In this document: positions 14,100 to 64,000 of the stretch, one piece after another
How positions within the stretch are numbered: position 1 is the first letter of the stretch
Layout: every line of letters begins with the position of its first letter
Source: Basidiobolus meristosporus CBS 931.73
Taxonomy: Eukaryota > Fungi > Basidiobolomycota
Direction of reading: 5' to 3'
DNA length: 64,000 nt
Assembly (NCBI GenBank): GCA_002104905.1
Contig: MCFE01000151.1
Location: 89,256 to 153,255 of the forward strand
Position numbers and translations under genes: made by a program
The notes under the pieces: model-generated
What the model was told of the DNA's origin: nothing
What the model saw: only the letters and a program-made list of their open reading frames with translations
Databases searched by the model: none

Positions 14100-15470
14100 A
14101 GGCTGGTCTTTATACATGTCCTCAGCAAGTTCTCCACTCAGCAATGCAGTTTTACATCCATTTGATGTGTAAAAACTGATATTTGGCTGCAACAGCAAAT
14201 ATTAATATGATGGAATTTAACTTGGCTACCAGTGCAGAGGTCTCAGCATAGTCCAATCCATTTGTTTGAGAGTATCTTTTGGCCACAAGTCTTGCTTTGT
14301 ATCTTTTAATGGTACCATCATCCTTGCATTTTGTCTTCAAGACCCATCTGCATCCAATTGATATTTGGTGGATTGATTATTTGACTGAGTTCCAGGTGTG
14401 ATTTTCCATCAGTGTCTGCTACTCCACAGTCATTGCAGATCTCCAAGGTTTTGTCTAAGGGCTATTTAGGGCCTCTTTTACAGTCTGCAGCTCATCAATA
14501 TGGACTGAATAGGAATGGGCTAAGCTTGCACTCTCATTAATATGGTATTTTGGGCTATTTCTGGTCCTGTTGGATCTCCTTGCTTATGATACAGGATTGA
14601 TCACTTTTGGGATACTCCTGGGCACTGATTTAAGCTGTATTAAGGTTGTAGGGTCCTCTAGAGTGAAAAAATACGCACTGGTAAGTCTTTTGTAGGAGTT
14701 TTTGTAGACACTGGAAGTGATTGGGAGAAGAAGTAGATTGTGTGTTTTCTGTCAATGATTTATTGAATGTAAGATTAGTATTTGTACTACTACATGATTC
14801 TGGCAAAACAAACATGAAGAATACTTTAATAAAGGTCTCAAATACATGCATGCAAAGTTTAGGGCTGTTATAACAACTCATCAAACTTTTATGATCTAGG
14901 TACCTAATATATTAGTGAAAATGTTCTGAGTAAATCTCAAAAAGGGATTTGGTCAGTATTCTCTTATCTTTGTAGGTATTGATCTAAGTGACCAAGTTTG
15001 GTGAACATTTAGGTGAAATCACAAGCTTTTACAATGGACAGAAGTCCCAAGAACTCAGCTGTTAGGCTATTCAGGGGGATGACTATTGCATCTGTGTCAT
15101 TACTTTACTTATCCACTTGTTTCATCTTGTTAACCTACATGGCATACTCAAAGTCCCTGGGAGAACAGGTAGATTGTGTGACTTTCATTGATTGATATAT
15201 TGATTGTAAAAGTAGTATCAACATCTCTATAAGGTCTTGGCAAAACAAGCCCACACATTTTATATAGAAAGGTCTCAAGAGCATGTATGAAAGGTTTAGG
15301 GCTGTTTGGACAGCTTACCAATATTTTATATTCCAAGTAGCTGATATTTTAGTGAAGATATTCTTGGTAAGTCCCAATAACAAGTCTGACCAGAATCCCC
15401 CAAGATTTGTATACAATGATCTAAGTTACTCAGTTAGGTGAATATTCAGCAACAATTACAAAATTTATAA
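14100..15470 (-). mobile_element. Degenerate Copia remnants (RT start; two LTR-like copies at about 14690-15034 and 15150-15470)
   Basis: ORF 14152-14340 KDDGTIKRYKARLVAK is Copia RT; the LTR-like sequence aligns by eye with 58596-58944. Confidence 0.8.
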
Positions 15471-18166
15471 CCAAGTCAAGAATGCAAAGAATGCTTGAAA
15501 TGCCTTGAAAGACACTTTTATTTATAGTCAACAGCTAAGAAAGTGTTATATTACAAAAGTGTTGCCTGGCAAAGAAAGGAAAATCAGCTCTACAGAAATA
15601 CCCAGGTGGTCAATGAGATGAAATCAGTGGGTAAGTAGGTAGCTGCCATCTAGCTCTATAGCTCAAGTATACAAGTACAACAAGGTCAAAATTCTCATGG
15701 CTACCTGTCTGGTACATTTGCTGCTCATTTCAGCTATGCTAGCATATAGCTGTACTACCCAGTTCACCAATATTAGGTTTTGTATGACATTGACATTGAC
15801 ATTGTGGTTGTCATATATGAGCGTGAAGGATGCTAAGAGAACCTGGAGAACAACCAGGTAAATAAGATGCTGCCACAAGGTATATGGTATTGCTGGCTAC
15901 TTTTACTCTGGATAGATATAGTATGCAACCTATAAACAGCTTGCAGAAAAGATACCATCACCATATTACGGGAGCAGCATGCTGTGGAAATTTTGATAGG
16001 CAAAAGAACTAAATTTGCAATCCCCGATATATATGTGCAAGCTACGATTAGATATCTAAAATATGAATATCTGAAGGGCATTGGTGGTGCACTGTAGGGA
16101 AGCCCACCAACATCCAATATAAGTTCAAAGTGGAGCACGCAACAAACCAGGAGTGGATACCTCCGTAGCAGCCACCGCTATAACAAGCCCCCATTATCAC
16201 ACAGTATTGGCAATATGCAAATCATTACTAGGGACAATTGTAGCAAGATTGCGGGTAGTAGTGGAAGTGGTCTGTTGAGCAGGTAGAAATTAATACTATT
16301 CCTCAATAAGTAAATTCATCCAAACAAACCACTTAAACCATAAACAGCAAGGGAGTTTACAAGATAATGGGCCATTCGAACGCGCAGCCCAGCCACTGGC
16401 AATCACAAATCAGGATCAATCAGGGGAAGGGTGTGGGCTACCGGTAAAAATGCAAAAATGCAAATTCACAATCTTCACCATGGGTAGCACTGCACCTACC
16501 ATTCCGAGATCATGGGTTTTACTATGGATTGTAGTTCAAAAATAAGTGGGTGAGCCTGTATGAGCTCTGAGGCTCCAAGCAACTTGGGGACCGATTGTTC
16601 TAGGTACGCAATACCACTGAGGGGTTGGCGACCAAGCATCTGGCCAATCACAGTCGACCGCAATCTGAGGGCCAGTAGCTCATTGCCACAGGTAAATTAA
16701 GATATTCATCCAGTGAGCGCTGCATACTACTCGCAACCATATGGAATTCAGGTTGTCTCCAACTGGATCACCTGCTAGATGCAGCAAAGCCAGCTTAGTA
16801 CTTTGGATGGGAATCTGGTGAACTAAGGATAAATCACCGTTACACAGTTCACTCAAGCACCTGGGCGATAGAAAACTCCATACGATGACTACATAGCGCT
16901 TACCCTCAGAACGGTTGGTGGGCTTGACACGGTTTTGGGTTGGGCCTCAATGTAGGGATTAGGAGGTTGAGTGTGATTACACGAAATGAGGCATTTATGC
17001 TAATTAAGCTGCAATTCATCCGGCTCTTAGCTCAGATATAGGGCTGCCGTTTCCAACCTGATTGCCTCACCCATAGGGTACGAGCTCATTCTATTCGATG
17101 GAAAAGATCGAGGGCTCCTAGAATTATTCATGGTTCACGACAACCTAAATAAAAATCCAGGTGACAAGAATAGAACTTCCGGTTTAGGCACATATCAGGC
17201 TGTGTCACCTGAGTCCATGGAAGGACTTCTACGTTGAATGGGAGAAAGGCTGATTAATCTAGAAACAAACAGCCTCCCTAATGAGGCGTATCTTGAGCGA
17301 AGCCAATGCTGTGGTTATGCCGAATTAGCAGCATCACCCGAAATCATATATTTGGTTGATTCGGTAGTGAACCTAGAGATCTCCACACCCCTCGACCCGG
17401 TACAAGCAAGGCAGGCCCTCTCCTGACGGGTGCTGATTCAGATAGGATGAAGCTCACAACAGAGGCCCCGAAGACAAGAATAGGACTGTCAGAGCCATCA
17501 AAGAGCAGAGGTAACCCAGCACAGTTTATCTCGGCATAGTGGGGATCAATTCACTCATTCTGGGACGATTCCGATATCATGGCAGGAAACCAATACTTGT
17601 TCAATATCACCTAAACCACTCTTATCAATGCCAATCCAGATAATTCCAAGATTCCCTAAACTAGCAGGTCCCCATGATTGGCCACACCTCTGCGTTGGTG
17701 CATAGGTGATTCGGTTTGGTCAACCCATATTAGTGGATCAGCCACTGATCTTGCGAACGGATATTTTTGAACAAAAGAAACTTAATTGGATTTCGAATTA
17801 GGAATCACCATTTCCACACCACAATTGTTGTCCTGACACCCATTTCAATTAGCCGTACATTGTGTCGAGTGGATCAATGATCTGATAGTGTCACTCAATG
17901 CTAACCTTTGATTAACTGCTGAGATCCGGAACTACAAATGATGCGGATCTCTTTGATGCGAGGATCGGTCCATTTCAACTCATTCGCGTGAATGTAAACA
18001 ACGTGGTGATTCTTTCAGGGAATCCCAGTGATAATCGCGACTCCCTATAAAAGGCGCCGGGCTGTCCCTCGCCTGCAAGGCACTTTCCCCTTAGCTCGCT
18101 TCCATTTGAAGCAATCCCTCCTTCCAAACAGGCCAGGCTACGACTTAGAAACACCCCGCCAGCCGA

Positions 18167-22326: not shown

Positions 22327-22988
22327 AATACATCCAGAGTACACACTTGAAAGCTACTGAGTATGAAAGATGTTTTATATCCCATTATTACATCTATATA
22401 TTGCATTAACTTTGTCACTGAGATCATAGTACTTAGGTTTTGGAGCACCATGTCTAAGCACTCTGTTGTAATATACTTGCCATAACCAACCAAAATGTCC
22501 TATACACAGGAGATGCCAATATTCATACTAATACCATAGTATCCTCACCTTCAATGTAGGCTCTTTGAAACTTATTACATATATGGCATGTGCTTACTTT
22601 GCCTATGAGAATATCTCACTTGAAACTCATCTGATGATATTCTAATACTATACTTGTATTTTCAAGGTATTTTGCCGGTATTCAGCTGGTATTTTTTTAT
22701 TGTCAATTTGGTGAATGTACCTAAAAATTTACTTAACTTGGTTTGTTGGATCACTGTCAACATGTGAGAAATCTGGCCAAGTTCCTTCTTAAGACTTACT
22801 AACAACATTTTAACCAAAAACGCTGGGTGCCCAGAATATGACAGATCTAAGTGTTGTCCAAGCTGATTGGGAGAGCAAGTAGATTATGCAGTTCCCACTT
22901 AATTCCTGAATGAATCCAAAGGTAGCTTGCTACTGTGAAATGATCTAAGCAAATCAAACACATGGAAGATGTTTAGCAAGGGCCCAAG

Positions 22989-25900
22989 TGTTTCAGGTGT
23001 CTTAGAGATCTTCAAAGTAATTAGGAGAAGAAGTGAATTATGTGGTTGCACTTAATAATTTAATGAATGTAAAAGTATTATCAGTACTTTGACATGGTCT
23101 TGGCATAACATACATATAAAATAGGCTTAGGAAGGTTGCAAGAACATGTGTGCAAAGTTTGGTGCTGTTTAAACAACATTGAGAATTCTCATGGTTTAAG
23201 TACCTGATATTTTGGTGAAAATATCCTAAGCAAATCCCAACAAGAAATTTGGTCAGTATTCTCAAGGATATGAAGGTAATGATCTAAGTGACCAAGTCAG
23301 GTGGATATTAAGGTGGAACTCAGAGCTTTTACAACACTCTCACTAAACTAAATGTACATACTGACTAGTCCTGGTTTTGGCCTAAGATATTCAAATTTGT
23401 CTCTAACTAATGGTTTGGTAAGTATGTCTACAATCATTTCATCTGTAGGACAGTAAACCAAGTTAGCCAAGTTACTCTCTATAGCTTCACCTATGAAATG
23501 ATGTCCAATACCTATGTGCTTAGCTCTAGCATGAAAAGTTGGATTTCTACCTTATTGTATACATCCTTAATTGTCCTGAAATAAAGTAATAGGTGTTTTT
23601 TGACATATGCCTAGGTCTTGAAAAAGTTTCCTTAGCCCAATTGCTTCTTTTTCAGCTTCAAAGGCTGCCATATACACTGCCTCTGTGGTAGAAAGTGCTA
23701 TGGTTAGTTGCTTTTTTGAATTCCTTGTAATTGCTGCTTTACAGTAAGAAAGGTGTGTTTCAAGCATGATATACATCAGACTGCCAACCGTAGACTGATA
23801 AGGAAAGCCAGGGCATTCCAAAAGAACTAAGCTCTCTTGACTTGGCTGAGTTCTGACCATGTTAAGGTTTGCCTCCATTGGGGTAGCTACCAGCTTACAG
23901 TCTTCCATTTGATACTTCTTTAGTATGTCTTGAATATTTTTTGATAGGCTTAGGGTTTTAGTCTGGGTACTTCTGCCTATATATCTATAGCCCAGTCATT
24001 TTGTTTGAGCGTATCTTTTGACCACAAGTCTTGCTTTGTATTTTTCTATTGTTTCATCAGCCTTGTATTTTGTCTTAAAGGCCCATCTGCATCCAATTGA
24101 TTTTGGTTGATTGGTAATTTGACTAAGTCCCAAGTTTGATTTTCCATCAGGGCCTGATATCCATCAGTCATTGCAGATCTCCAAAACTTTGTCTGAGGGC
24201 TATTGAGGGCTTCATTTACAGTCTGGGGTTCATCAATATGGACTGAATAGGCATAGGCCAAGTTTGTACCCTCATTGTTTGGGCTATTTCTGGTGTGCTT
24301 AGATCTCCTAGCATTTGATACTGAAACAATCACCTCTGGGATATTTCTGAGCACTGCTTCAGGCTGAACCATGGTTATAGAGTCCTCTGTAGTGAAAGCA
24401 TGCTCATTGTTTTGCTCTGATCCAATCCTGGCAATTGATAGACTTGAAATCAGATTTTTGTCATTGTCTGATGTCATTTTTTGATAATATTTTGAATTTT
24501 CATCAAACAGCACATCCCTGGACTTGATCAGCTTCTTTGCTTTGGCGTTTTATAGTCTGTATGCTTTACTCTCACTGCAGTAGCCCAAAAATATGCATTT
24601 TACACTTTTTGGCTCCAATTATGACTGATTTCTGGATAGTTTCTTGGCATATGCTATACACCCAGATATTCTTAGATGTTCTAGACTTGGTCTCCATCCA
24701 TACCATGTTTAAAATGGAGTAGAATCACAAAGTATTCTGTTATAACTCCTATTTGTAAGGTATACAGCAGTGGCAACTGATTCTGCCCAAAAATCATAGG
24801 ATTATTTTTGATCATGGATTATAGATATTGCCATATCAATTATTGATCTGCTTGCACATTCTTCTACTACATTTTGCTGTGAAAAGTATGGTACAGCAGT
24901 CTCTTGCTTTATCCCATGAATTTTGCAGAAGTGGATGAAGAGTTTTGAGGTATGTTATCCGCCATTGTCAGAGTGTATTTTCTTGATTTTTTCCACAGTT
25001 TCTCTCTCCACCATGGCTTTGAGCTCCCTGAACTTAGAAAGAGCTTCATCCTTTCTCTCCATGAAGTTGACCCACATGTATCTTGTATAATCATCATAAA
25101 AGTGATTAAATACTTCATCCCACCTAAGGATAAATTTTGCATAGGTCCAAACTAATCTGAGTGAATTAAATCTAATTTTTTCTTGGTTTGGTTTGCCCAG
25201 AGCTCTTGAACAGTTGTCTGGCTTGTTTTCCATATATGCAGGCTTCACAGTGCTCCAAATTTGCTGGTGGATCAGCTTTTACTCCCAAAATTAGCTGATC
25301 ATTGATCATTTTGCACAAATAATCAAAATTGATATCTCCAAATCTCCTGTGCCAAAACATTGGTGTTTCTTCATTTAAGCTACTTATATTGGCTTCTAGA
25401 TATGATGGAATATAGTCAATTTATACAGATTCTGATCTCTGATATCCAAAGCAATATGAGGACCATTTTGATCAGTGATCCTGCATCCAGAATTGCCAAA
25501 ACTGAAACTGAGTCCTTCTGCTGTAGCCTTGCTTACAGATAGTAGGTTCTTGGCTATTTCTGGTACATAGAGTACTTCTTTAAAGGTCAGTGTATGGCTT
25601 CCTTCACTGCTTCTTAGGTTTACTTGGATAGTTCCTTCTCCCACTGCATCCAGTGTTCTATCATCACCCATGAAAACCTTCTTAATTGGAATTTCTTGAT
25701 ATTGGGTAAAAAGTTCTTTTTGGTGTGTAAAGTGTTGAGAAGCTCCAGAGTCAATATACCACGTCTGAGAATCCTTGTTTGTGGTCATATTTAGTGCAGA
25801 TATGAATAGTCTATCTTCAGTTGTTGCAGCATTTCCACATTCAGGCTTCTTTTGCTGATAATATCTCTTTTTGAGACACTGGTCTAATGGGTGTCCTTTC

Positions 25901-26971
25901 CTTTTGCAGTAGTTGCAAAATAGGTTGCTGTTGCCTTTGTACGGTCTTGGGTACCTCCTTTGTTGGTTATCATTGCTTATTAAAGCATTTTCTTCTTCCT
26001 TCTTATTGGCGCTTGATTTTCTTAATTCTTCATCCAGGAGCCTTCCATATACGTAATTTAAGGTCAAATCTTCAGTTCTGGACTCTAGGGCTGATACAAG
26101 GCCCTGAAACTTGTCTGTCAGGCTATTCAGGATGGTAACTATCACTTCCTCATCAGTAGCTGGTACAGCCACAGATTCCATCTCATCTACCAGCAGGGTA
26201 ATTCTGTTAATTAGATTTTTCATTTCTTCTCCTGGTAGCATCTTTGTAGTAAGAATTTTTGTCTCAGATACATTTTCTTGGCAGCTGAACATGACTGGTA
26301 GGTGTCTTCTAATGCTTTCCAGGCATTCTTTGCTGTTTTTGCTCTTGAGCATTGAATTAGCAATTTGTCCTTGACATTAAGGCAAATGCAGTTAAAGGCA
26401 CTTTGTTCTTTCTTCTGGTACTTTAAGGCTTCCTCTCCCACGTTTTTAGGAGGGCATTCTTCTCCCATGACAATATCCCAAAGGCCTCTTTCTTGTAGCA
26501 GCATCTTCATCTTCACCTTCCACACTTGGTAGTTGGATCCATCCAACTTTTCAGCAGAGGGAAGAATTCCAGTAACAGCAGTAGTAGACATTGCAGAGAG
26601 TGACAGCTTGGGGCTCATAACCTGTTGTAAGAGTCTTGGAGATATTGGAAGTGATTTGGAGAACAAGTAGATTATGTGGTTTTCACTTAATGATTTATTG
26701 AATGTAAAAGTAGTATTTATACTTTTACCTGGTCTTGGCATTACAAACACGTAGAATAGGTTAAGGAAGGTCCCAAGAACATGTGTGCAAAGTTTGGGGC
26801 TGTTTGGACAACTTTGAGAATTTTCATGTTCTGGGTACCTGGTATTTTGGTGACAATATTACAAGTAAATCCTGACAAGGAATTTGGTCAGTATTCTCTA
26901 GGATTTGAGGGTAATGATCTAAGTGACTAAGTTAGGTGAATATTTAGGTGGAATTACAAATTTTTACAACA
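22989..26971 (-). mobile_element. Degenerate Ty1/Copia element with internal RT deletion
   Basis: 5' LTR 26623-26971, PBS, gag-PR (ORFs 26220, 25396), integrase, RT and RH fragments, diverged 3' LTR about 22989-23336. About 470 bp of RT is missing at about 23985 relative to the 58.6-63.3 kb copy. Confidence 0.9.
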
Positions 26972-27735
26972 GCTATATCAATGAAAATATTTAGTCATAT
27001 GAAAAGTATGGGTACTCTTGGAATATACACATACTGAGACCTAAATGAGTACTCAAGTAGGGATTCTTACAAAGAGTAACAATGTTTTATTCAATATATC
27101 AACAGATGTTTACCTCAGTGCCCCCTATTGACTCAAAAGGGCATACGCCCCAAGCAAGTAGTGCCAGAGATTGCCAGCACCTCTATTTCCAACATGCTGT
27201 AACTAAGAAATCTCATGAAGGCTCCAAGTTTGCTTCATAGTGATGATGTTCAACACAAGGACAAAGGTCTTCAGGAGCCTGTCATCAGTATAGAAAATGA
27301 GCCTTAGGGGATCCTGGAAGATATGGACAAGCACTGGCTCAAAGATTAAAGAGCTGGAAACATAATATCCTTTGGCCTAAATGGTGAACAAATGATGTTG
27401 CATTCAAAGGTAACGTAGGCCAGAAGGCCTGGTTGGAGCCAAGGGATGTCTACCAGATTAAGCTCCTTAGAAATAAGCCATTCTGAAGGAGCTTACTCAA
27501 TGAAAGAAAGCAGTCCACATAAGATTCCAAACAACAAACGTGATTAATGAGTCCCTAATACAGATATGGTACGCCCCAGGTAGGAGTGGCTTTATCAGAA
27601 TATTTCACACTTCAGCTTTAATGTTAGCACTGAGAGATTAAGTTAAGATTAGGGGAACGGGCTGGGAGTATAGCAGAAAAGGTTAAGTGGGGGTGGAATA
27701 GATCAGGGAAGGTCGGGAGGGAGGTGGCCGTTAAA

Positions 27736-50016: not shown

Positions 50017-51799
50017 TTTTGTACATTACCATTTTATAAATCAGTAGAGTAACGCTGAACCCACCTTTAATAATACTTGATCTACGTGTGCTATTCTATT
50101 CAGTAAAAATATGAAATCATCAATATTAATATAATGCGGTTTATCCCCAACTTAACATTACAGTTCAAGTTACTAATTGTTTGCCAGAGTTACTGTGAAT
50201 GAGCGTGATTGTTTCCCATTCTACAAATCGGGAATGTTGGTGGAATGTGCGCCAATCCAAACAGCCAACGCTTGGTAAATAGGCTTAGGAAACGCCAGCA
50301 GCTGGCTTAGAACTTTAGAGAGCTGAACTAATAGCGGTCATAACAGTTCACTCATGTAGTTATTAGCGGACTTCAATGCTTGGAATCGGTGAGTGACTTT
50401 TGTACCAGAGTACGAGAACTAGGAGAAAGACGTATTCTCACGCATCAGTACATAGCTTTCGAAACCGTGGTACCATAGTAGTCATTTTCGCATAAGTGCA
50501 GTGTAAGCAGGAGAAATACACTGCAGTAGAAGTAGAGTTCACATAAAAACATCAAATAATCATCATCGCAATATGTAGTGAGTTGTAATAGATCACGTTT
50601 TAGTATGTCTATTAGTATTGGTTGGCCAAAGCTAAGTTGGCAGATTATCGTATTTGTGTTAGATCTTGATGGAGTTAGGTGCTTAAACTTGTTACACTAC
50701 CGATCAATCGGATACACAATCATATGAAGAACCTCAATCGTTGTTTCCCTTGGTATTATTATTGTTTTTTATTATGCTAATATTCTAAAAACCCGACTAT
50801 TCACTAATGACAAGGTTTGGAGCAATAACCATACTGTACAGGTCAACTCACGTCAACTCACGTCAACTCCCAATTCGTGAGCAGCCTGAAGGGTCCCAAT
50901 TAGACTCCGGAGGGGTTTATGGCCTAGAAGTATCAGGTCAGCATGATCGGGGGACAGAAACTCGCTAGTTAGATAGTCACGAGTGTCGTGGATCTCAAAG
51001 ACATCGGAACCATTTTTTTCAGCGCGAATAATAGCATTGGGAGGTAAAAGAACGGCGTGGGCAAGGAAGTTCGGAAATATGGATCCATTACTTTGGAAAC
51101 GGATTGGCACTCAAGACCGTGTGGTCCGAATCTCGCAAGCCTTAGATCATTTGTTTGAACAGATCTAATCGTTCACTTGGGTTACCAGTGTGCCTTATAC
51201 CTAGCAATTGTCAATACATCCAGCCTCTTCCATTGGCTGTGTATTGCTCAACCTGATCTAATTTTCTCTTACATCTCGTATATGCTACACTTTCGAAGTA
51301 CCCGGCTTTCTCAGTGAGCATGTAAACACAAGGGTAGGAAGTAGTATCATCTGTATGCGTAGCTCCCTTCAGCCCGGCGTAGCCAGAAATTCGAGACCGA
51401 GTCCTGCTTGGCATTCAATACTAAACTCCTTACTCACATTAGTAGTATTCGAGCTATGGAAGTGTAAATGATGGAGTTTTAGGATAGCAAAGGGATACTT
51501 GGTGCTTACAAGGTACAGGGGAAAGTGGAGCTTTCGGAGTGAGCGGATATGTGGTAAGACGTAGTCGGAAGGAGCACCCGTAACCACCCAAGAGCAACTT
51601 ATGCCAAGAGATCAGTCAAAATAACGAAGCATGTTTGATAAATGGAACATGGCGTAGCGGGTCAGCATATATATACATCGAAGAAGCGATCTGCGAGAAT
51701 TAAAACTTATTCAGTCATCGTCCTAAAAGCCACTGTACTAAAGGGAGTATGCTAGCTACATTCTGGGATTATTCTAACTAAACAAGTGCAGAGTCGTTG

Positions 51800-52364
51800 T
51801 GATAAAGTGTTTATTGACTTCTTCGGTTGCCCCGAATTGACCTCGGTATACTTGTCCAAGGCTTGATGAAGTTTACCCCACAGGCCGCCATGACAATTCT
51901 TAACCTCCTCCCACTCCCTCAGGGTTTCGCTTAAAATCATCAGCCAGCCACCAACAATGAAATCCGCATAGGATGCCTTTTCGCCCTCAAGGAATGGCCC
52001 ATTGCTACGTTCATAGAACTTATTGAGCACTCCGAGAGCTGTTTTGAATGTTTCGAGTGTCCGCGTTCTCTCTTCTCCCTCATGATTTAAATTGGCCCAT
52101 TTCTCTTTACCTGCTCTCCATACAAAATCTGCTTTGCTCTTTTCAGCGGTTCGGGTCAAAAGGAATGCCATGAACGAATAGAAAGAATACCTGGACAAAA
52201 ATGGCATCCACTTGTGCGTTGAACGCCACGTGAAGACCTATTGTCGAGGGTGGGAACAATGTCTGGCCATTTGGATATATTTCATCAAGACAGAGTGTAA
52301 TATCAAATGAGTCTCCTATGATTTCTCCGGTGAAATGATCTTCAATGATTGGCAGGGTATAGGG
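51800..52364 (-). pseudogene. Glutathione S-transferase-like gene, 5'-truncated and frameshifted
   Basis: YTLPIIEDHFTGEIIGDSFDI...AFNAQVDAIF...HGIPFDP, frameshift near 52150, then TAEKSKADF...GPFLEGEKASYADFIVGGWL...HGGLWGKLHQAL. No N-terminal residues or start codon before the junction at 52362. Confidence 0.8.
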
Positions 52365-53270
52365 CTAGGGTTAGGGGGAGACAGTCACCAACAGGTGAAA
52401 TCTTTATTTCAGTTGAAATAAAGAAGTCAGCGCTACTTTTGTAGCTTTGATACAAGAGTGTGTAGCTGAGGGGAATTTGTATGTAAGTTAATAACAAGTG
52501 ATGATAGTTCTTCAGTGCTCAAGACACTGTTCAAAGGGATGGGGGGTAGCAAGAGAGGTAAGAATGACTTGTGAACAACATTAATGAGGGGAATATGATA
52601 AGGATCAATATTCATCATAAAGAGAGTGTGCAGCTTCAGATACTGCTGCCAAAGGTCTGTCAAGTTCTTCAGGTAGGCCAGCTTGGGTTTTTCTGACTGC
52701 AGAATATAGTGAGAAAACTTCTTGACTTCAGGATCTCCAAGTAGAGTTCTCCAGCAGGAGCCAAGTGTAGTGTGGTGTGTTCTCTTCCAGGCCTTGATCA
52801 GTGGGTTGTTGCAGTGGTGAAGTCTGAGATATAATCTGGTTCTAAGGTAGAGAAGTCTGATCTTGTAGGGCATAAAGCCAAAAGCACCAAGAATAGCATG
52901 TATGTAGAGGCATTCAGGTAGATGAGGCACTAAGGAGGTAATACACCAGACTGCAAGCTTGTCAAGCTTAGTGCAGTCTCTAGAAGTAAGAGAGAGAAGT
53001 GGTAAGCCAAATTCCAGGACAGGGAAGACAAACTGCTTGAGTACAAGGAGGCAGCTGGGAGCTGAAGTTGTAGGAGGAGTTACAGCCAGTAGCTTGTGGA
53101 GTGCTTGTTTTGCCAGGATAATTCTCTTCTTCAGGTGTGCTCCAGAGTCTAGTCCAGTAGGAAAGAAAGAAAAGCCAAGATATGTAGCAGAAACCTGAAC
53201 AGGTAGAGTGCAGCTCTCTAAGTAGAGAGGGCAACCCAAATGTACTGTCTTTGCAATGGAAAGCTGGAGA
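52362..53270 (-). mobile_element. Non-LTR retroelement unit A1, 5'-truncated (C-terminus of RT ORF plus 3' double hairpin and telomere-like end)
   Basis: ORF 52433-53239 is about 90% similar to the end of the RT ORF of unit A2; identity stops at ...CTGGAGA (53270). Confidence 0.9.
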
Positions 53271-54026
53271 GGGTTAGGGGAGGGAAAGTCACCAAGTTGG
53301 TGAAATCTTTATTTGAGTCAAAAATTAATCTAAGTACAAATAAAGAAGCCAATTAAGAAGTGTAGAACCTCTCTAATGAGTAATCTAATTTATGTTTTGT
53401 TTCATCTCTAATGTTTGTTTCTACAAGGTAAAGCTCATCAGGGGTCAATATATAATTCAAGGGTTTTGGGGGAAGTACAAACTGTAGATGATTCTGATTA
53501 ATATAATCCAAGACTGGAACCCAGCCTGGGATTAGGTGTAGTAGGAAAGATGTGTGGACTTGTAAGTAGCTCTGCTACATAGATCTTAGATGGTCCTGTG
53601 CCAGTATTCTTGGTTTCTCAGCTTTTTGAAGTTTTGAAGCAAGCTCTGTTACTACAGCAGAGCCAACCAGGGTGTGCCAGCAAGAAGATTTCAGGGAGGA
53701 GTTAGATTTAAGCCATTATTTGATGGAGGGGTTATGTGATTTCTGAAGTTTCAATAGGAAGGAAGCATGGAGATGGACCATTTGGATTTGGCATAGGTAG
53801 AACCCAAAGGCTCCATTAGTTGCATGGATATAGGGAGATACTGGAAGATAAGGTACCAAGGATCTGATACACTGATGGAGAAATTAATCCAGGTGGTGAA
53901 GTTCTCTGGAGGTTAGGGGTATAATGTGGAGACCAAGTTCAAGTACCAGCAGTACATACCACTTTAGAAGTATAGGGATCTTTTGAATTGAAGTTTCTGG
54001 AGTGACTACTACCAGAAGCTTTTTAA
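53271..54026 (-). mobile_element. Non-LTR unit B1 (diverged family), RT C-terminus with stops
   Basis: Manual translation LLVVVTPETSIQKIPILLKW...IHATNGAFGF...SSCWHTLVG...EKP...LPPKPLNYILTPDEL aligns with the A-family C-terminus; same terminal motif as A1. Confidence 0.8.
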
Positions 54027-54832
54027 TGTTGTAAGAGTCTTGGAGATATTGGAAGTGATTGGGAGGACAAGTAGATTATGTGGTTTTCACTTAATGATTT
54101 ATTGAATGTGAAAGAAGTATTTATAGGTTGACATGGTCTTGGCATTACAGACACATAGAATTGGTAAAGAAAGGTCCCAAGCACATGTGTGCAAAGTTTG
54201 GGGCTGTTTGGACAACTTTGAGAATTTTCATGTTCTGGGTACCTGGTATTTTGGTGAAAATATTCCAAGTGAATCCCAACAAGAAATTTGGTCAGTATCT
54301 TCTAGGATTTGAGGATAATGATTTAAGTGACTAAGTTAGGTGACTATTTAGGTGGAATTACAAATTCTTACAACTCTCCCACTCAGCTAAATGCTCATAC
54401 TGACTAGTGCTAATTTTGACCTAAGCTATTCAAACTTGTCTCTAGCTAATGGTTTTGTAAATATGTCTGCTACCATTTCATCTGAAGGACAGTAAGCTAA
54501 GTTAGCTAAGTTAGTCTCCATAGCTTCACATATGAAATAATGTCTTATATCTATGTGCTTAGTTCTAGCATGAAAAGTTGGATTTCTAGCTAATTGAATA
54601 CATCCTTGATTATCTTGAAATAAAGTAATAGGCGTTTTTTGACATAGGCCTAAATCTGTAAAAAGCTTTCTTAACCACATTGCTTCATTTGTAGCTTCAC
54701 AGGCTGCCATATACTCTGCCTCTGTGGTAGAAAGTGCAATGGTTGGTTGCTTTCTTGAATTCTGTGAAATTGCTCCTTGATATTAAGAAAGATGTATCCT
54801 GTGGTAGAACTTCTGTCTTCCAAATTTTGTCC
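54027..54832 (-). mobile_element. Copia 3' fragment (3' LTR 54027-54375, PPT, RNase H), truncated at the next junction
   Basis: Matches the reverse complement of 62476-63280; ORF 54426-54710 FQDNQGCIQLARNPTFHARTKHIDIR. Confidence 0.92.
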
Positions 54833-55733
54833 TTAGGGTTGGGGGGATGATCATCACCAATGGGTGAAATCTTTATTTAAATAATAAATAAAGAAGCCAA
54901 GTTTGAATATGAATATCTGAGATGCAGGAAGCCTACAAGATAAACTTGGACTTTGCTGTATCCCAAATATCCTCAATATCAAAGTCTAGAGGAGAGTGTA
55001 GCAAGACTGCTTGTTCACTGTAGTATTTCTTGAGGAAGTTTGTGACTCGAAGGGAAGGAGAGTTTTTCAACAAGCTGGTAAATCTTTTGAGGAGTTCTTT
55101 TTCCAGAGAGAATGGCACAAAGAGTGGAATGTCCAAATGATGTCTGAATATATGCTCTGAGAGCTCCCAATCTAGCATATTTTTGACTTCCTCTGTAAAA
55201 TCTTCAACAATATCTTTGTCAAGAATAACTTCCAAGAGATCCCTGGCAATGTACTGAATGTTAATAATCTTGGGCATATGAATACCTAGGTCCTTGAGGT
55301 AGTTTCTTTGTTCTGATATTGGGAGATATCCTGCATTTCTGAAATAGCAAACAGCCCAGTTGGCAGTAGGAGGAGTATCAAGGCTGACAGGGAATCTTCT
55401 TCTGGCTTTAGAGTGCACTGGCTTAGGAGACTGTCTTGATGGAAGGGCAGCTGGTTTTGGATGAGCTTGAAGTGCTTGGGAGTAGGTCTGAGTACAAGTA
55501 GTAGAAGTTCCTGGTTGCTGAGAATTTTCAGATTGACTGGATGAAGAGCTAATTGAGGGGTTGCAAGGTAAGGAAGAAGCTGAAAGAGAAGTGGAGAGGG
55601 CTGGGTGAAGTTCAGAAAGAGTTTTGAAAAGAATTTGGGTCTGAGATTTCAACATTGAGTTTTCAGCATCAAGAAGAGAAACTCTTTGTTCAAGGTAAGA
55701 AGTCTGTAAAGAGTGAAAGTTAGGTAAAGACAT
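54833..55733 (-). mobile_element. Unit C: ORF1-only element with the shared 3' terminus
   Basis: Intact 266-aa ORF (54933-55733) homologous to ORF1 of unit A2, followed about 40 nt later by the double hairpin and CCCCCCAACCCTAA; no RT sequence. Confidence 0.75.
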
Positions 55734-58700
55734 GGGTTAGGGTCAGGGTTAGGGGGAGACAGTCACCAACAAGTGAAATCTTTATTTTGGTTGAAACAAA
55801 GAAGCCAGCGCTACTGTTGTAGCTTTGATACAAGAGTGTTTAGCTGAGGGGAATTTGTAGGTAAGTTAATAAGAAGTGATGATAGTTCTTCAGTGCTCAA
55901 GACACTGTTCAGTGGGAAGGGGGGTAGCAAGAGAGGTAAGAATGACTTGTGAGCAACATTAATGAGGGGAATGTGATAAGGATTGATATTCATCATAAAG
56001 GGAGTGTGCTGCTGCAGATATTGCTGCCAAAGGTCTGTCAAGTACTTCAGGTAGGCCAGCTTGGGTTTTTCTGACTGCAGAATATAGTGAGGAAACTTCT
56101 TGACTTCAGGATCTCCAAGTATAGTTCTCCAGCAGGAGCCAGGTGTTGTGTGGTGTGTTCTCTTCCAGGCCTTATCAGTGGGTTGTTGCAGTTGTGAAGT
56201 CTGAGGTATAATCTGGTTCTAAGGTAGAGAAGTCTGATCTTATAGGGCATAAACCCAAAAGCACCAAGAATAGCATGTCTGTAGGGGCATTCAGGCAAAT
56301 GAGGCACCAAGGAGGTAATGCACCATACTGCAAACTTGTCAAGCTTAGTGCAGTCTCTAGAAGTAAGAGAGAGAAGTGGTAAGCCAAATTCCAGGACAGG
56401 GAAGACAAACTGCTTGAGTAGAAGGAGGCACCTGGGAGCTGAAGTTGTAGGAGGAGTAACAGCCAGTAGCTTGTGGAGTGCCTGTCTTGCCAGGATAATT
56501 CTCTTCTTCAGATGTGATCCAGAGTCTAGTCCAGTAGGAAGGAAAAGAAAGCCAAGATATGTAGCAGAAACCTGAGCAGGTAGAGTGGAGTTCTCCAAGT
56601 TGATGGGAGAGCCCAAAGGTACTGTCTTTGCAATGGAAAGCCGGAGATTATTCTTCTGCAGATACTGGTGGATGGTCTGGGAGTCTTGTTGCACATTGGA
56701 GGAGGATATTCTGATGTCATCAGCAAAGAGAGTAACCAGGCAGTCAGCTGAGAGTCTTGGGAAATCATTCAGGAAGATGGCAAACAGTATAGGACCAAGC
56801 ACAGAGCCCTGAACCACTCCATTAGGAACTGAGAACACAGCTGATTGCTCACTTGGGTGCAGAATTCTTGCTTGTGGATCCAGAAACAGAGACCTGACAA
56901 GGAGGGTGAGAGAGGTACTGGAGAAGCATTGCAACTTGGACCAAAGCAGATTTCTGTCAACTGAATCAAAGGCCTTAGTATTATCAAACAGAACTGAGGG
57001 ATACTTGCACTGGAGAGAGTGATCTTGGCTAAGTATGACTGCATATTCCAAGGAGAGGCCAGGAACAAAGCCAAACTGTGCAGGATGAAACTTGAGGGAG
57101 TCAGAGTAGAGCTCCTGAGCAAGCAGAAGCTCAAGCACCTTTCTGCAGGTGGGCAGCAGAGATATTGGCCTGTAGGAGCTAGGATCCAGGTGCTTTCCTT
57201 TACCCTTGTACAGTGGCAGAACATTTGCAAAGGACCATTCCTCAGGAGTAGAAAGCTGGGCTGAGCATTGCTGAAACAGTGGAAGCAGAAGTGCAGACAT
57301 GGCCTTGGTACTAGTCTTCAGAAGCTCACAAGAGATTGTGTCCACACCTGGAGCAGTAGAGTTGGGAAGCCTCTTGAGCACATTATGGATTCTCCTTTGA
57401 TCAAGTGCAAGTGGGATGGGCAGAGTCTTGAAGTCAGGATGAAAGCCAGGAGTTGCGTACTGCTTTGTAGAGAAGAAGATGTTAGCCAGCTGTTCTGTTG
57501 AAGGTAACTTCCTGGAAGAGGGCCTCATTGCCCTGTAGAGTCTTGATACTGTTCTTGTTATAGAGTTGGAAGATTGCAGAGGCAAAGAACTCATAATATG
57601 ATCCCAGAGCTGAGTATGCAGAGTGTGGTGAATTGCCTTGGAGTGGTGCATTGCTGTCAGGAGGAGTTTCTCTGTTTTTGGGTTAGGGAAACTCAGGTAG
57701 CTTTGTTGCAGGGCTGAAACAATGGATTCCCATTTTCTTGAGGTAACAGCAGTAGTCTTGCATGGCAGTGTGAGGGAGGCAGACACCAGAATCAGATGCT
57801 TCACAAAGAGCAAGGCATAGTTGAGATCATCTGGCAGAGAAAGTTGCAAACTGGCAAGCTTCAAGTAGTTCCCAAAGTCTTTCTTCTGATTCTTGGTAGC
57901 TTTGTGGGTGAGCACAGTAAGTTTTGGCAGCTTCTTCTTCACAACTGGTTGCATAGAAAGGGACCAGGCTGGGTGGTCAGAGGCTCTCAAGGATCCTAGC
58001 TCAGCTCCAGAGAATTGCTTAACTTCATTCACAAAGTAGAGGGCAGCAGCAGAAGGGCAGATCCAGTCAACACATTTTTCTCAGATTGAGCACCTAGTGC
58101 TAGCAGATGGCTTTCTCTCAGGAAGTTCAGTAGGAATGTAGACCTTGGCTTCATTCTTGCAGTCAGAGTAGTCTTGTTCTCAGGATGGGGAATGTTGAGA
58201 TCTCCACGCAAGATAACAGGTGTTGATATAGATTGTTGGTATTGCCAAACCTTCTGGCATATAACTTGCACTTCCTGAAGGGCAAGACTTGGAGGCAGAT
58301 AGCAGAGCACCAGACTGATAGTTGGCAACTGGAGAGCAGCACAGTAAGGGGAGTAAAGAGGAACACAGAGCTGAAGAGTATTGATGGTAGAAGAGATGAA
58401 GTAGATAGAGGAGGTATTCTTTGTTCTAGGAGTAGAAAAGCAATATAGATTAGTCAAAAGTATAGAGGGTAGCTGGACATCAATCAAACACAGGAGGGAA
58501 AATCTTGAGAGAAGTCTCCCTAGAGTTGGTCTTGATGGCTGTATGCTGTTGCAGTTAAGCAACAGAACTCCAGGTAGTCAGGCAGAGGTTGTAGCTGTTG
58601 TAAAAATTCGTATTTCCACCTAAATATTCACCTAACTTAGTCACTTAGATCATCACCTTCAAATCCTAGAGAATACTGACCAAATTCCTTGTTGGGATTT

Positions 58701-61700
58701 ACTTAGAATATTTTCACCAAAATGCCAGATACCCAGAACATGAAAATTCTCAAAGTTGTCCAAACAGCCCCAAACCTTGCACACATGATCTTGGGACCTT
58801 CCTTAACCTATTCTACATGTTTGTAATGCCAAGACCAGGTAAAAAGTATAATACTACTTTTACATTCAATAAATCATTAAGTGAAAACCACTTAATCTAC
58901 TTGTTCTCCCAATCACTTCCAATATCTCTAAGACTCTTACAACAGGTTATGAGCCCCAAGCTGTCACTCTCTGCAATGTCTACTACTGCTATTACTGGAA
59001 TTTTTCCCTCTGCTGAAAAGTTGGATGGATCCAACTACCAAGTGTGGAAGGTGAAGATGAAGATGCTGCTACAAGAAAGAGGCCTTTGGGATATTGTCAT
59101 GGGAGAAGAATGCCCTCCTAAAAACGTGGGAGAGGAAGCCTTGAAGTACCAGAAGAAAGAACAAAGTGCCTTTAACTGCATTTGCCTTAATGTCAAGGAC
59201 AAATTGCTAATTCAATGCTCAAGAGCAAAAACGGCAAAGAATGCCTGGAAGGCATTAGAAGACACCTACCAGTCATGTTCAGCTGCCAAGAAAATGTATC
59301 TGAGAAGAAAATTCTTTACTACAAAGATGCTGCCAGGAGAAGAAATGAAAAATCTATTTAACAGAATTACCCTGCTGGTAAATGAGATGGAATCTGTGGG
59401 CATACCAACTACTGATGAGGATATGCTAGTTACCATCCTGAATAGCCTGACAGACGAGTTTAAGGGCCTTGTATCAGCCCTAGAGTCCAGAACTGAAGAT
59501 TTGACCTTAAATTACGTATATGGAAGGCTCCTGGATGAAGAATTAAGAAAATCAAGTGCCAATAAGAAGGAAGAAGAAAATGCTTTAATAAGCAATGATA
59601 ACCAACAAAGGAGGTACCCAAGACCCTACAAAGGCAACAGCAACCTATTTTGCAACTACTGCAAAAGGAAAGGACACACATCAGACCGGTGTTTCAAAAT
59701 GAGAGATTATCAGCAAAAGAAGCCTGAATATGGAAATGCTGCAACGACTGAAGATAGACTATTCATATCTGCACTAAATATGACCACAAACAAGGATTCT
59801 CAGATGTGGTATATTGACTCTGGAGCTTCTCAACACTTTACACACCAAAAAGAACTTTTTACCCAATATCAAGAAATTCCAATAAAGAAGGTTTTCATGG
59901 GTGACAATAGAACACTTGATGCAGTGGGAGAAGGAACTATCCAAGTAAACCTTAGAAGCAGTGAAGGAAGCCATACACTGACCTTTAAAGAAGTACTCTA
60001 TGTACCAGAAATAGCCAAGAACCTACTCTCTGTAAGCAAGGCCACAGCAGAAGGACTCAGTTTCAGTTTTGACAATTCTGGATGCAGGATCACTGATCAA
60101 AATGGTGCTCATATTGCTTTGGGCATCAGAGATCAGAATCTATACAAGTTGACTTATATTCCATCATATCTGGAAGCCAATATAAGTAACTTAAATGAAG
60201 AAACACCAATGCTTTGGCACAGGAGATTTGGGCACATCAATTTTGATTATTTGCGTAAAATGATCAAAGATCAGCTAATTTCTGGAGTGAAAATTGATCC
60301 CCCAGCTATTTTGGAGCACTGTGAAGCCTGCATATATGGGAAACAAGCCAGACAACTGTTCAAGAGCTCTGGGTTAATCAAAACTAAGAAAAAATTAGAT
60401 CTAATTCACTCAGATCTGTGTGGACCTATGCAAAATTTATCCTTAGGTGGGATGAAGTATTTAATCACTTTTATTGATGATTATACAAGATACACATGGG
60501 TCTACTTCATGGAGAGAAAGGAAGAAGCTCTGTCTAAGTTCAGGGAGTTTAAAGCCATGGTGGAGAGAGAAACTGGTGAAAAAATCAAGAAAATACGCTC
60601 TGACAATGGTGGAGAATATACCTCCAAACTCTTCATCCACTTCTGTAAAATTCATGGGATAAAGCAAGAGACTACTGTACCATACTCCCCACAGCAAAAT
60701 GGAGTAGCAAAACGAGCTAACAGATCAATAATTGATATGGCAAGATCCATGATCCATGATCAAAAATTATCCTATGATTTTTGGGCGGAATCAGTTGCCA
60801 CTGCTGTATATCTTAAAAATAGGAGTTATAACAGAATACTTCGTGATTCTACTCCATTTGAAGCATGGTATGGATACAGACCAAGTGCAGAACATCTAAG
60901 AATATTTGGGTGTACAGCATATGCCAAAAAACTGGCTGGAAATCAGTAAAATTTGAGCCAAAAAGTGTAAAATGCATATTTTTGGGCTACTGCAATGAGA
61001 GTAAGGCATACAGACTCTACAATACCAAAGCAAAGAAGCAGATCAAGTCCAGGGATGTGTTGTTTGATGAAAATTCAAAATTTTCACAAAAAATGACATC
61101 AGATGATGACAAAAACTTGATCTCAAGTCCACCAATTGTCAGGATTGAATCAGAGCAAAACAATGAAAATTTTTTCACTCCAGAGGACTCTACAACCGTG
61201 GTTCAGCCAGAATCAGTGCCCAGGAATATTCCAGAAGTGATCATTCCAGTATCAAATGCCCGGAGATCCAATTGGACAAGAAACAGCCCAAATTACTATA
61301 TCAAATTGGGTACAAACTTAGCCTATGCCTATTCAGTCCATATTGATGAACCCCAGACTGTAAAAGAGGCCCTAAATAGCCCTCAGACAAAGTTTTGGAG
61401 ATCTGCAATGACTGAGGAATATCAGGCCCTGATGGAAAATCAAACTTGGGACTTAGTCAAATTACCAATCAACCAAAAATCAATTGGATGCAGATGGGTC
61501 CTCAAGACAAAATACAAGGCTGATGGTACAATTGAAAGATACAAAGCAAGACTTGTAGCCAAAGGATACTCTCAAACAAAAGGACTTGACTATACTGAGA
61601 CCTTTGCACCGGTAGCCAAGTTTGATTCCATCAGATTAATATTGGCTATGGCAGCCAAATATAAGTTTTTTACTCATCAAATGGATGTAAAAACTGCATT

Positions 61701-63793
61701 TTTGAATGGAGAACTTGCTGAGGACGTGTATATGAACCAGCCTGATGGATTTGCTGACCAAAATAGCCCCCATTTGGTCTGCAAGCTTAAAAAGTCACTA
61801 TATGGTCTCAAACAATCACCAAGAGCCTGGAATTGCAAGATAGATTCTTATTTGGAATCTTTGAGTTTCAAAAGGAGTAATGCTGACTATAGTATATACT
61901 ATAAGCCAGATAGAGCAAATCCAGCTCTATTAGCTCTATATGTGGATGATCTTATTATAGCCGCCAATAACCTAGAAACATTGGAAGAGACTAAATCCAA
62001 CCTATCTAAGGAGTTCAAGATGTCCAATCTAGGAGGACTCAGTCACTACTTAGGGATTAAGTTCTCCATAGACAGAAGTACCCAGACTATTACCCTAAGT
62101 CAATCCAAGTATATTCAAGATATACTAAAGAAGTACAAAATGGAAGACTGTAAACCGGCAGCTACCCCAATGGAGACAAACCTTAACTTGGTCAAAACTC
62201 AACCAAATCAAGAGAGCTTGGTGCCATCTGAAAGCCCTGACTTTCCTTATCAATCTATGGTTGGCAGTCTGATGTATATCATGCTTGGAACACGTCCAGA
62301 TATCTCATATTCAGTGGGAGTTGTCAGCCAACATAATCAGAACTATGGATCTGATCATATTGCAGCAGTTAAGTGGATTTTTAGATACCTAAAAGGAACT
62401 GCTGATATCTGCTTAAGATACACTTATAAGGATTCAGAACAGGACCTTGTGGGATACTCTGATGCTGATTGGGGATGAAATTTGGAAGACAGAAGATCCA
62501 CCACAGGATACACCTTTCTTTACTGTAAAGGAGCAATTTCATGGAATTCAAGAAAGCAACCAACCATAGCACTTTCTACTACAGAGGCAGAGTATATGGC
62601 AGCCTGTAAAGCTACAAAAGAAGCAATGTGGTTAAGAAAGCTCTTTGCAGATTTAGGCCTATGTCAAAAAACGTCTTTTACTTTATTTCAAGATAATCAA
62701 GGATGTATACAATTAGGTAGAAATCCAACTTTTCATGCTAGAACCAAGCACATAGATATTAGACATCATTTCATACAAGAAGCTATAGAGAATAACTTAG
62801 TTAGCTTAGTTTACTGTCCTACAGAGGAAATGATTGCAGATATATTTACCAAACCATTAGCTAGAGACAAGTTTGAATATCTTAGGTCAAAATTAGGACT
62901 AGTCAGTATGAACATTTAGCTGAGTGGGAGTGTTGTAAAAATTTGTATTTCCACCTAAATATTCACCTAACTTAGTCACTTAGATCATCACCTTCAAATC
63001 CTAGAGAATACTGACCAAATTCCTTGTTGGGATTTACTTAGAATATTTTCACCAAAATGCCAGGTACCCAGAACATGAAAATTCTCAAAGTTGTCCAAAC
63101 AGCCCCAAACCTTGCACACATGATCTTGGGACCTTCCTTAACCTATTCTACGTGTTTGTAATGCCAAGACCAGGTAAAAAGTATAAATACTGCTTTTACA
63201 TTCAATAAATCATTAAGTGAAAACCACATAATCTACTTGTTCTCCCAATCACTTCCAATATCTCCAAGACTCTTACAACAGTAGCTTCTTCAGAGGCAGC
63301 ATTGACAATGTGACCTGCAGAGTCGCAGAGCTCTTCAAATGGTGCATCACTTAAGTCAGCAAGGAGGGAAATGGCATGATTCTTGAGGAAGTATGCCGCA
63401 TCATAGGAGGGGGCTTGTCTCTTGATGGCAGCAAAGAAAGACAGAATGGCAACATGGGCTGGAGGCTTGTAGAACAGTAGAGAGTCAGAGGATTCAGATT
63501 CTTCAGGCACTATCTTGAAGTCAGTTTTCAGCCAGTTAAGGTTCTTCTCCACAAAGGCAACAAATGGGTCAGCAATGTTTTGGTCTAGGATAACCTCCAG
63601 AATCTTCCCTTTTCTCCAGGCCAGGTTGACAATTCTTGAGAGCTGAATATTGCATGCCCTGAGTGCTTTCCTGATGTTGGAAATGGGAGTCCAGGGAACT
63701 TGCTTCAAGTACACCACAGTCCAGGTAGAAGCTGGTGGTAGGTTTGCTGGGGGCTTGTAAGTCCTTCTGTGTTGCAATGGAGCTGCAGTAGTC
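55734..63793 (-). mobile_element. Non-LTR unit A2: 5'-truncated ORF1 + APE endonuclease + RT, interrupted by a Copia insertion
   Basis: EN: LLLNCNSI, CYLPPS, GDLN, CVDWI, SDH. RT: APGVD, PLYKGKG..DPSSYRPISLL, QFGF, KAFDSV, QGSVLGPILF, FADD. Frameshifts near 58085 and 56170. ORF1 at 63281-63793 continues at 58578-58595. Confidence 0.92.
58596..63280 (+). mobile_element. Full-length Ty1/Copia element, 5-bp TSD GTAGC
   Basis: LTRs 58596-58944 and 62931-63280 (about 7 differences seen); GTAGC at 58591-58595 and 63281-63285; PBS GGTTATGAGCCC; PPT TGAGTGGGAG; gag(CCHC)-PR(DSGAS)-IN-RT(YVDD)-RH; one frameshift at about 60947 and one stop at 62479. Confidence 0.97.
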
Positions 63794-64000
63794 TTAGGGG
63801 AGGGAAAGTCACCAAGTTGGTGAAATCTTTATTTGAGTTAAGAACTAATCTAAGTACAAATAAAGAAGCCAATTAAGAGGTCTAGAACCTCTCTAATAAG
63901 TAATCTGACTTATGTTTTGTTTCATCTCTAATGTTTGTTTCAATAAAGTAAAGCTCATCAGGGGTAAATATAAAACTCAGGGGTTTTGAGGGAAGTACAA
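63794..64000 (-). mobile_element. Non-LTR unit B2, 3' end (continues off the window)
   Basis: Nearly identical to 53274-53480 (TTAGGGGAGGGAAAGTCACCAAGTTGGTGAAATCTTTATTTG...). Confidence 0.9.

Follow-up and report, generated by a model that had tools for sequence, protein, structure and literature searches.

The last 11.6 kb of a 64,000-nt stretch of the genome of the fungus Basidiobolus meristosporus CBS 931.73 (contig MCFE01000151.1 of assembly GCA_002104905.1, positions 89,256 to 153,255 of the forward strand; hereafter the window) hold a one-way pile of five long interspersed nuclear element (LINE) units, all in the same orientation, at positions 52362–64000. The units belong to three families, A, B and C, and follow one another in the order A1, B1, C, A2 and B2. 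Each opens with 7–23 nt of TTAGGG-like sequence and a common two-hairpin 3′ tag; the element 3′ ends face inward and the G strand points toward the contig end. An earlier description made from the letters of the window alone (the sequence-only reading) had reported five co-oriented, abutting units with TTAGGG-like left edges and without target-site duplications (TSDs) or poly(A). The motif positions and a self-BLAST map of the window agree with that description, and the head-to-tail stack of telomere-tailed LINE units is confirmed. The best explanation we can offer is that the pile represents the inner and now fossil portion of a stack at a chromosome end. The features are listed here by position in the window; RT is reverse transcriptase, APE apurinic/apyrimidinic endonuclease, ORF open reading frame, LTR long terminal repeat and GST glutathione S-transferase.

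51752–52361, minus strand: remnant of a host GST gene, with the exon for the C-terminal domain and the final third of the N-terminal domain; the 5′ part is missing
52355–52378, plus strand: junction 1, about three degenerate telomere units and a G run
52362–53270, minus strand: unit A1, a 3′ fragment (0.9 kb) of LINE family A with the C-terminal RT region, cut within ORF2
53271–54026, minus strand: unit B1, a 3′ fragment (0.75 kb) of LINE family B, ending where a Copia LTR tip inserted (54027)
54027–54832, minus strand: broken Copia element, 3′ LTR (54027–54374) and RNase H end
54833–55733, minus strand: unit C, a dependent element with ORF1 only and the shared 3′ tag (ORF at 54933–55733, 266 aa)
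55734–58595, minus strand: 3′ part of unit A2, with the tract 55734–55756, the 3′ tag, RT, frameshifted APE, UGA and the last ORF1 codons
56047–58032, minus strand: RT of A2, followed by the frameshifted APE to 58577 and the UGA at 58578–58580
58596–63280, plus strand: complete Copia LTR retrotransposon nested in A2, with gag, integrase and RVT_2; its LTRs are 98.0% identical
63286–63793, minus strand: 5′ part of unit A2, ORF1 residues ~131–294, interrupted within ORF1 by the next unit
63794–64000, minus strand: unit B2, the 3′ end of family B (TTAGGGG and tag), cut off by the contig end
52394, 53299, 54863, 55772 (one mismatch) and 63819, plus strand: copies of the 16-mer GGTGAAATCTTTATTT
52355/62–52378, 53271–53280, 54833–54846, 55734–55756 and 63794–63800: TTAGGG-like boundary tracts

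The 16-mer GGTGAAATCTTTATTT occurs five times in the window where 0.1 occurrences would be expected by chance. All five copies are on the plus strand and inside 52394–63834, with no copy in the other 52 kb, and every copy has on its immediate left a short hairpin arm as well as a G run and TTAGGG-like bases. Around the LINE units of the window we found no poly(A), no A runs, no flanking TSDs and no LTRs. Position 64000 is the right end of the contig, which stops 207 nt into B2 and carries no telomere array there, and the left end of the contig is ordinary sequence.

Self-BLAST relates the units to each other. A1 (52355–53270) is 93.1% identical to A2 (55734–56647) over 916 nt, the first ~230 nt of B1 (53251–53480) are 90.5% identical to B2 (63772–64000), and the Copia piece at 54027–54832 is 91.3% identical to 62478–63283 of the complete Copia. 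The 3′ tag of A1 lies at 52379–52432. In A2 the RT is recognized by RVT_1 (1e-24), the APE region is 96% identical with a change of frame (tblastn), and 63284–63777 is 97% identical to residues 131–294 of ORF1 from intact family A copies. A2 is thus disabled both by the frameshift in its APE domain and by the Copia inside its ORF1, and all five units in the window are dead fragments. The nested Copia is flanked by the TSD GTAGC (58591–58595 and 63281–63285) and has a stop between integrase and RT (ORFs 58817–60949 and 60865–62478). As this one Copia family has left at least five copies or fragments in 64 kb (5731–6690, 13896–15471, 22864–26975, 54027–54832 and 58596–63280), the window is a Copia-rich subtelomeric zone.

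What lies to the left of each unit had been described as interrupted. This holds for the GST gene, the RT of A1, the Copia and ORF1 of A2; C, which had been thought to break at its own start, is 5′-truncated just past its ATG, and the position of the cut is a coincidence because other copies of C extend ~190 nt farther as 5′ untranslated region (5′UTR). The GST remnant matches GST_C_7 in Pfam at 1.2e-16 and GST_N_3 only over profile positions 45–73 of 75, the final ~30, and junction 1 overlaps its last codons by a few bases of microhomology. The broken Copia has a whole LTR tip adjoining B1, and its broken side, which faces the chromosome end, carries the tail of C. Had the units been inserted into intact sequence, the cut neighbours might have been found again on the distal side; none of them (GST, family A RT, Copia, family A ORF1) resumes farther right within the window.

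The units also differ in age. Compared with the rest of the genomic copies, A1 has a median identity of 93.7% (37 other copies), B1 of ~94%, C of 98.4%, A2 of 98–99% and B2 of 96.9%. B1 is 94–95% identical to at least 40 genomic copies and C has at least 40 copies at 93–99%. Judged from these identities, the inner units are older than the outer ones, as outward growth predicts, with an age step of 4–5% between B1 and C. A2 is itself no recent insertion, since the Copia nested in it has LTRs that are 98% identical.

The orientation seen in the window is found throughout the genome. In the whole assembly the tag pattern occurs 667 times in forward and 54 times in reverse orientation (721 sites), and for (TTAGGG)4 the counts are 7604 forward and 81 reverse. 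The bias of the array, 7604:81, indicates that contigs are laid out with the telomere to the right, and that the elements follow the direction of the telomere; the test of orientation bias that the sequence-only reading had proposed for its terminal motif thus comes out in its favor. The sites listed cluster near the right ends of contigs, for instance within 18 kb of the array on contig C1 and within 10.5 kb on contig C2, so that among them copies are concentrated toward chromosome ends and in one orientation relative to the telomere repeat. Telomere arrays were at the right end in the contigs inspected, and the contigs were seemingly oriented by the assembler or the submitters. There are ~240 telomere arrays, which implies very many chromosome ends.

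In contigs that reach the telomere, 30–40 TTAGGG units (180–240 nt) are placed directly on 5′-truncated or full-length elements. A gene for TERT is present, with exons for the RNA-binding domain (RBD; 3e-11 and 1.9e-8), the T motif and RT motifs A and C. It lies at C935:171609–174923 on the minus strand (loci L045/L046) and consists of many short exons; motifs 1/2 are recognizable and the examined locus stops at motif C. Because of this gene and the terminal arrays, a reading in which the elements have replaced telomerase is not borne out, and we suggest that telomerase works alongside the LINE elements.

The 3′ end is common to families A, B and C and to further families at other loci. In order, it consists of a stem with the 3′ arm AAAUAAAG, a small CACC-loop-GGUG hairpin, a C run and terminal CCCUAA-type bases, and it ends with ~1.5 CCCUAA copies at the extreme 3′ end, without poly(A). 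The two-hairpin fold of the A tag, the C tag and one external relative has z = -3.5 to -4.8, with z = -4.8 for the tag of A1. Relatives from eight other public samples, whose ORF2 is 59–80% identical, carry a near-identical tag ending CCCCCTAACCCT(AA), and on one contig from these samples the first unit is backed by another truncated unit that bears the tag. The predicted fold, together with the near-identity of the tag in relatives with so divergent an ORF2, suggests that the tag is functional. None of 29 distant relatives from metagenomes (24–38% identity) has a telomere-type tail, which so far is limited to the Basidiobolus-type lineage.

Two other observations concern the tag and its surroundings. 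A short non-coding family with the same 3′ tag is found outside the window at other loci (L019, L022, L025 and L041), often in tandem, and its far end resembles an antisense tRNA (GGATTTGAACCCACAACC...). The 5′UTR of family C (L017, L034, L038, L041, L043 and L044) has words resembling GGGTTAGGG as well as two copies of a 19-mer that ends in GAGAGG, and several junctions and terminal telomeres begin exactly at these words. The G-strand end left by a full-length C copy would therefore already be telomere-like.

The junctions between the units are informative about the ends to which they were joined; their counts refer to the set of genomic loci examined and not to the whole assembly. Counted together with the G run, the telomere-like tracts of 143 distinct junctions have family medians of 7–14 nt; 128 of them are shorter than 18 nt and the longest measures 44 nt. 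The tracts between units are thus far below the normal terminal telomere of 180–240 nt, from which we conclude that the units were joined to very short or bare ends and not to ordinary G overhangs. For the 71 junctions with a recognizable A, B or C left flank, 0–9 nt of filler separate the break from the G run in 54, with 13 of the 71 having none, and the drop in filler length after 9 nt is as expected from an RNA ending in UAACCCUAA, that is, in ~1.5 repeats. Microhomology of at least 1 nt is seen at 31 of 40 clean junctions, with a mean of 1.5 nt against ~0.33 expected; in length it is 1–3 nt. Break points are scattered along the elements, with a skew to short 3′ fragments, and neither side of them has a sequence motif (n = 38). 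In most cases the left flank is a truncated element, a Copia or a gene, and carries 0–2 repeat units. No dispersed copies with TSDs were found in the window or the loci examined, and unitigs from short DNA reads of the same sample contain many further, different joints of a truncated element to a tail.

A Copia element is capped at 7 of 138 junctions, at seven different break positions and in both orientations, one of them being the piece at 54027–54832 (junction j76). As 5′ truncation of a LINE cannot produce a broken Copia or a broken GST gene, these neighbours show that DNA ends were capped, and not only that LINEs were truncated.

The sequence-only reading had taken the elements to be LINEs with APE and RT, and the domain matches, the modelled fold and the invariant catalytic residues support this. 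An intact copy of family A (L053) consists of ORF1, a single in-frame UGA and ORF2, which starts directly with a compact nuclease domain. Most of 67 scored genomic hits retain the 922-codon open frame, which leads us to believe that family A is active. Pfam finds in family A only RVT_1 (2.6e-25) and weak N-terminal EEP matches, and a sequence search of the PDB with an APE profile gave no match. An AlphaFold (AF2) model of the N-terminal nuclease with a pLDDT of 77.8 matches ExoIII/APE1 (8e-11) and the TRAS1 endonuclease (1wdu; 2.6e-9). The catalytic residues N8, D126/N128, D171 and S200-D201-H202 are invariant in four relatives that are 42–55% identical, and position 33 has D33 where E is usual. 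Model and residues together point to a nuclease of the APE type. The RT is LINE-type, with the RT of human L1 ORF2p as its best solved match (6e-13), and the closest outside matches of family A are arthropod APE–RT proteins at ~30% identity; the Atlas feature search returned only generic APE-plus-RT clusters that say nothing about the clade.

The ORF of family B is 50% identical to ORF2 of family A from just past the nuclease on, the pairwise alignment starting at A residue 248. That B might be an endonuclease-less LINE was considered and rejected for want of evidence: by hand translation, the frame at locus L063 runs upstream to the edge of the examined DNA, with homology to the segment just after the APE of family A. 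An APE fragment of another family, 38% identical, is also present. Family C is of a different kind. Its 266-aa ORF matches family A ORF1 in the C-terminal domain (30% identity, E = 4e-19), and because it has this ORF1 homologue and no RT, C is an ORF1-only element dependent on others. The C-terminal domain of ORF1 is modelled (pLDDT 72) as beta-alpha-beta-beta-alpha, with weak RRM matches of which none is significant.

Three further observations on the ORFs deserve mention. ORF1 of two relatives (L059 and L097) opens with a CxxC...CxC zinc-finger-like segment ahead of a coiled coil. In family A and three relatives (48–63% identical) ORF1 and ORF2 are in the same frame, split by one UGA followed by CUA or CUC (58578–58580 in the window; L053:3940–3942; L057:2112–2114; L059:1666–1668; L058:905–907), and the nuclease homology begins at the codon right after the UGA. 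This looks like programmed stop-codon readthrough, which would give an ORF1–ORF2 fusion. Finally, the word CCCTAACCC lies inside ORF2 (57677–57690 in the window, minus strand) and also in family B (L063, ~3430–3450), and it encodes FPNP(K)T; F, P, N, P and T are invariant, and the word itself is kept in A and in the 50%-identical B. Selection could act on the protein motif or on the RNA word, between which we are undecided.

For every unit, the geometry requires that the 3′ OH at which first-strand synthesis began belonged to the G strand and lay on the unit's left. We think it rather likely that the units were added one after another, by reverse transcription onto chromosome ends that were short or denuded, primed by the free end and alongside telomerase. 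In this model, a consortium with one common 3′ RNA tag would comprise the APE-plus-RT families A and B, the ORF1-only family C and, elsewhere, the short non-coding family. The RT would recognize the tag and use the RNA 3′ end ...CCCCCUAACCCUAA, without poly(A), as the end of its template. The CCCUAA end would pair with the final 1–3 bases, or with 1–2 repeat units, of the G-strand 3′ end of a critically short telomere or of a bare eroded or broken end. The element would then be copied outward, often leaving a 5′-truncated fresh end, which could be capped by telomerase or could prime the next unit, telomerase and further elements competing for it. For the window, the order of events would have been the break in the GST gene, A1, B1, insertion of a Copia and a break within it, C, A2, B2 and onward.

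Free-end priming is favored by the short tracts, the junctions without filler, the absence of a break-point motif and the capped breaks in Copia and GST. Beyond the anatomy, polarity, tag, coding capacity, tracts, microhomology and age order described above, what we infer is the priming step itself, and a free end rather than a nick as its primer. The sequence-only reading had proposed reverse transcription onto exposed G-rich 3′ ends. Polarity, the APE–RT coding capacity, the age order and the capped ends all agree with this, but not if ordinary G overhangs are meant, for which the tracts are too short.

Several points weigh against this reading. The APE catalytic residues are conserved across relatives that are only 42–55% identical, in a domain modelled with an APE/ExoIII fold, which suggests that nicking matters, and simple priming from an end needs no nick. 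This contig has no terminal telomere, so that the chromosome-end position of its stack is deduced from other contigs. We looked in the assembly for an intact allele or paralogue of the GST flank (50400–52361) and found this flank to be single copy. Some of the joints between units could also stem from template jumps of the RT rather than from separate additions to an end.

The first of these points leads to the alternative that survives best, which we consider possible, if unlikely: that, in the manner of TRAS/SART, the APE makes a nick in the G strand, either in or near the few units at the telomere base or at a loosely matching site in the terminal element, that the RT starts at the nick, and that the distal DNA is lost or replaced, leaving the left neighbour truncated. 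Besides the conserved fold and catalytic residues, the TRAS1 endonuclease is among the structural matches, the orientation is as expected from a G-strand 3′ OH, and target-primed reverse transcription, too, typically leaves microhomology at its junctions. On the other hand, the left tracts comprise 0–7 units and never 30–40, so that nicks would have to be confined to the base of the telomere, and 13 of 71 junctions lack filler while no motif surrounds the break points. In the window no interrupted sequence continues beyond any of the units, and non-specific nicks would yield dispersed copies with TSDs, of which there were none in the window or loci examined.

Non-LTR RTs are known to jump between templates, and this offers another origin of the stack: on reaching the 5′ end of one tagged RNA, or while still inside it, the RT could have switched to the CCCUAA end of a second one, in which case the stacked units would have arrived in a single insertion and would not record a succession of chromosome ends. 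The joints between units with 0–2 repeat units and short microhomology fit this, as do the similar ages of A1 and B1 and likewise of C, A2 and B2. It leaves unexplained the capped breaks in Copia and GST, the age step of 4–5% from B1 to C, and the joints with 3–7 telomerase-type units, and as an account of the whole stack we regard it as improbable. That the LINEs are in truth dispersed, and their stacking and orientation an artefact of assembly collapse or recombination among copies, is very hard to believe: although telomere-right contigs are an assembly convention and this contig breaks off inside B2, many different joints of truncated elements to tails occur in short-read unitigs of the same sample, tag and stacking recur in contigs assembled independently from other samples, the remaining 52 kb of the window have no copy, and the units within the stack are of unequal age.

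Returning to end-primed addition, the Basidiobolus elements can be compared with several telomeric retroelements. Like HeT-A, TART and TAHRE of Drosophila (Jockey clade), they form polar head-to-tail arrays with the 3′ ends toward the centromere and 5′-truncated inner units; they include a partner with only Gag/ORF1 that relies on an RT-encoding one, C being the parallel of HeT-A; autonomous members keep the APE; and broken ends are capped. Drosophila has neither telomerase nor telomere repeats, whereas Basidiobolus has TERT and terminal (TTAGGG)30–40, and the oligo(A) 3′ ends of the Drosophila elements contrast with tails that are complementary to the telomere, of the CCCTAA type.

The endonuclease-deficient Penelope-like elements Athena and Coprina of rotifers, basidiomycetes and others have short reverse-complement telomere repeats at the 3′ end, as found here, and share attachment to chromosome ends, 5′ truncation, capping by telomerase and a proposed pairing with the G-rich 3′ end. 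They differ in having a Penelope-type RT and no endonuclease, whereas the Basidiobolus elements have a LINE-type RT, an N-terminal APE and a separate ORF1. By this comparison Athena and Coprina are the mechanistically nearest model, although the Basidiobolus system is not a member of the group. TRAS and SART (Bombyx and other insects; R1 clade) are likewise of the APE type, specific for telomere repeats and coexistent with telomerase; they require a 3′UTR structure for precise initiation, and TRAS is oriented in the same way with respect to the G strand. They occupy a fixed site within long TTAGG arrays, with repeats on both sides and poly(A), whereas in Basidiobolus most left flanks are non-telomeric and poly(A) is absent. 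The APE is N-terminal in both, and the fold match does not show membership of R1.

MoTeR (Magnaporthe), FoTeR (Fusarium) and Cnl1 (Cryptococcus) share with our elements a fungal host, TTAGGG-type telomeres and being telomere-associated non-LTR elements. The telomere-like words near the 5′ end, as in the family C 5′UTR, are presumably also found in MoTeR. The nuclease sets these elements apart, being C-terminal and restriction-enzyme-like where the Basidiobolus one is an N-terminal APE; a Pfam scan of family A ORF2 found no restriction-enzyme-like endonuclease C-terminal to the RT, CCHC/RHD not having been searched for as patterns. MoTeR, FoTeR and Cnl1 are elements of the CRE clade with a restriction-enzyme-like endonuclease (PMC12857005). 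A 2023 catalogue of telomeric elements comprises SART/TRAS, GilM/GilT, Zepp1, MoTeR1, Tx1-1_ACar, Athena and the Drosophila elements (PMC10088271), and Zepp (Chlorella) and Tx1-1_ACar (anole), both from hosts with telomerase, are LINEs that target telomeric regions or accumulate there (PMC10088271).

In function the Basidiobolus elements look most like the endonuclease-deficient Penelope-like elements and in architecture, including the ORF1-only partner, most like HeT-A/TART. To our knowledge, Zepp and Tx1-1_ACar have poly(A) or conventional tails, and we know of no 3′ tag ending in a telomere repeat that is shared by several of their families. The system lacks defining features of each family compared, and we class it as a telomere-specialised non-LTR retrotransposon. 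The sequence-only reading had known of no described fungal APE-LINE system with this architecture, and in the literature we likewise found no paper on an APE-type telomeric LINE in fungi and nothing relevant on telomeres, retrotransposons or LINEs of Basidiobolus.

Telomere-specialised retroelements are central to ideas on the relation of telomerase to retrotransposons and on the loss of telomerase in Drosophila. The fungal examples that we found in the literature all have a restriction-like nuclease and insert into repeats. The Basidiobolus system differs in having an APE-type LINE whose RNA would end in the telomere template itself, a HeT-A-like ORF1-only partner, one 3′ tag common to several families, and junctions that point to action at ends that are very short or bare, in a host that retains telomerase. 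Because this fungus can be grown in culture, a free end versus a nick as primer, and a benefit to the host, can be tested at the bench. We tentatively propose that a consortium of an autonomous APE–RT LINE, a Gag-only partner and a short interspersed nuclear element, with an RNA end like the telomerase template (CUAACCCUAA), might act on hundreds of ends as a second system for healing critically short or broken telomeres in a telomerase-positive fungus. If this is true, it could benefit a host with very many small chromosomes, and Basidiobolus would represent a living intermediate between telomeres maintained by telomerase only and the retrotransposon-only telomeres of Drosophila.

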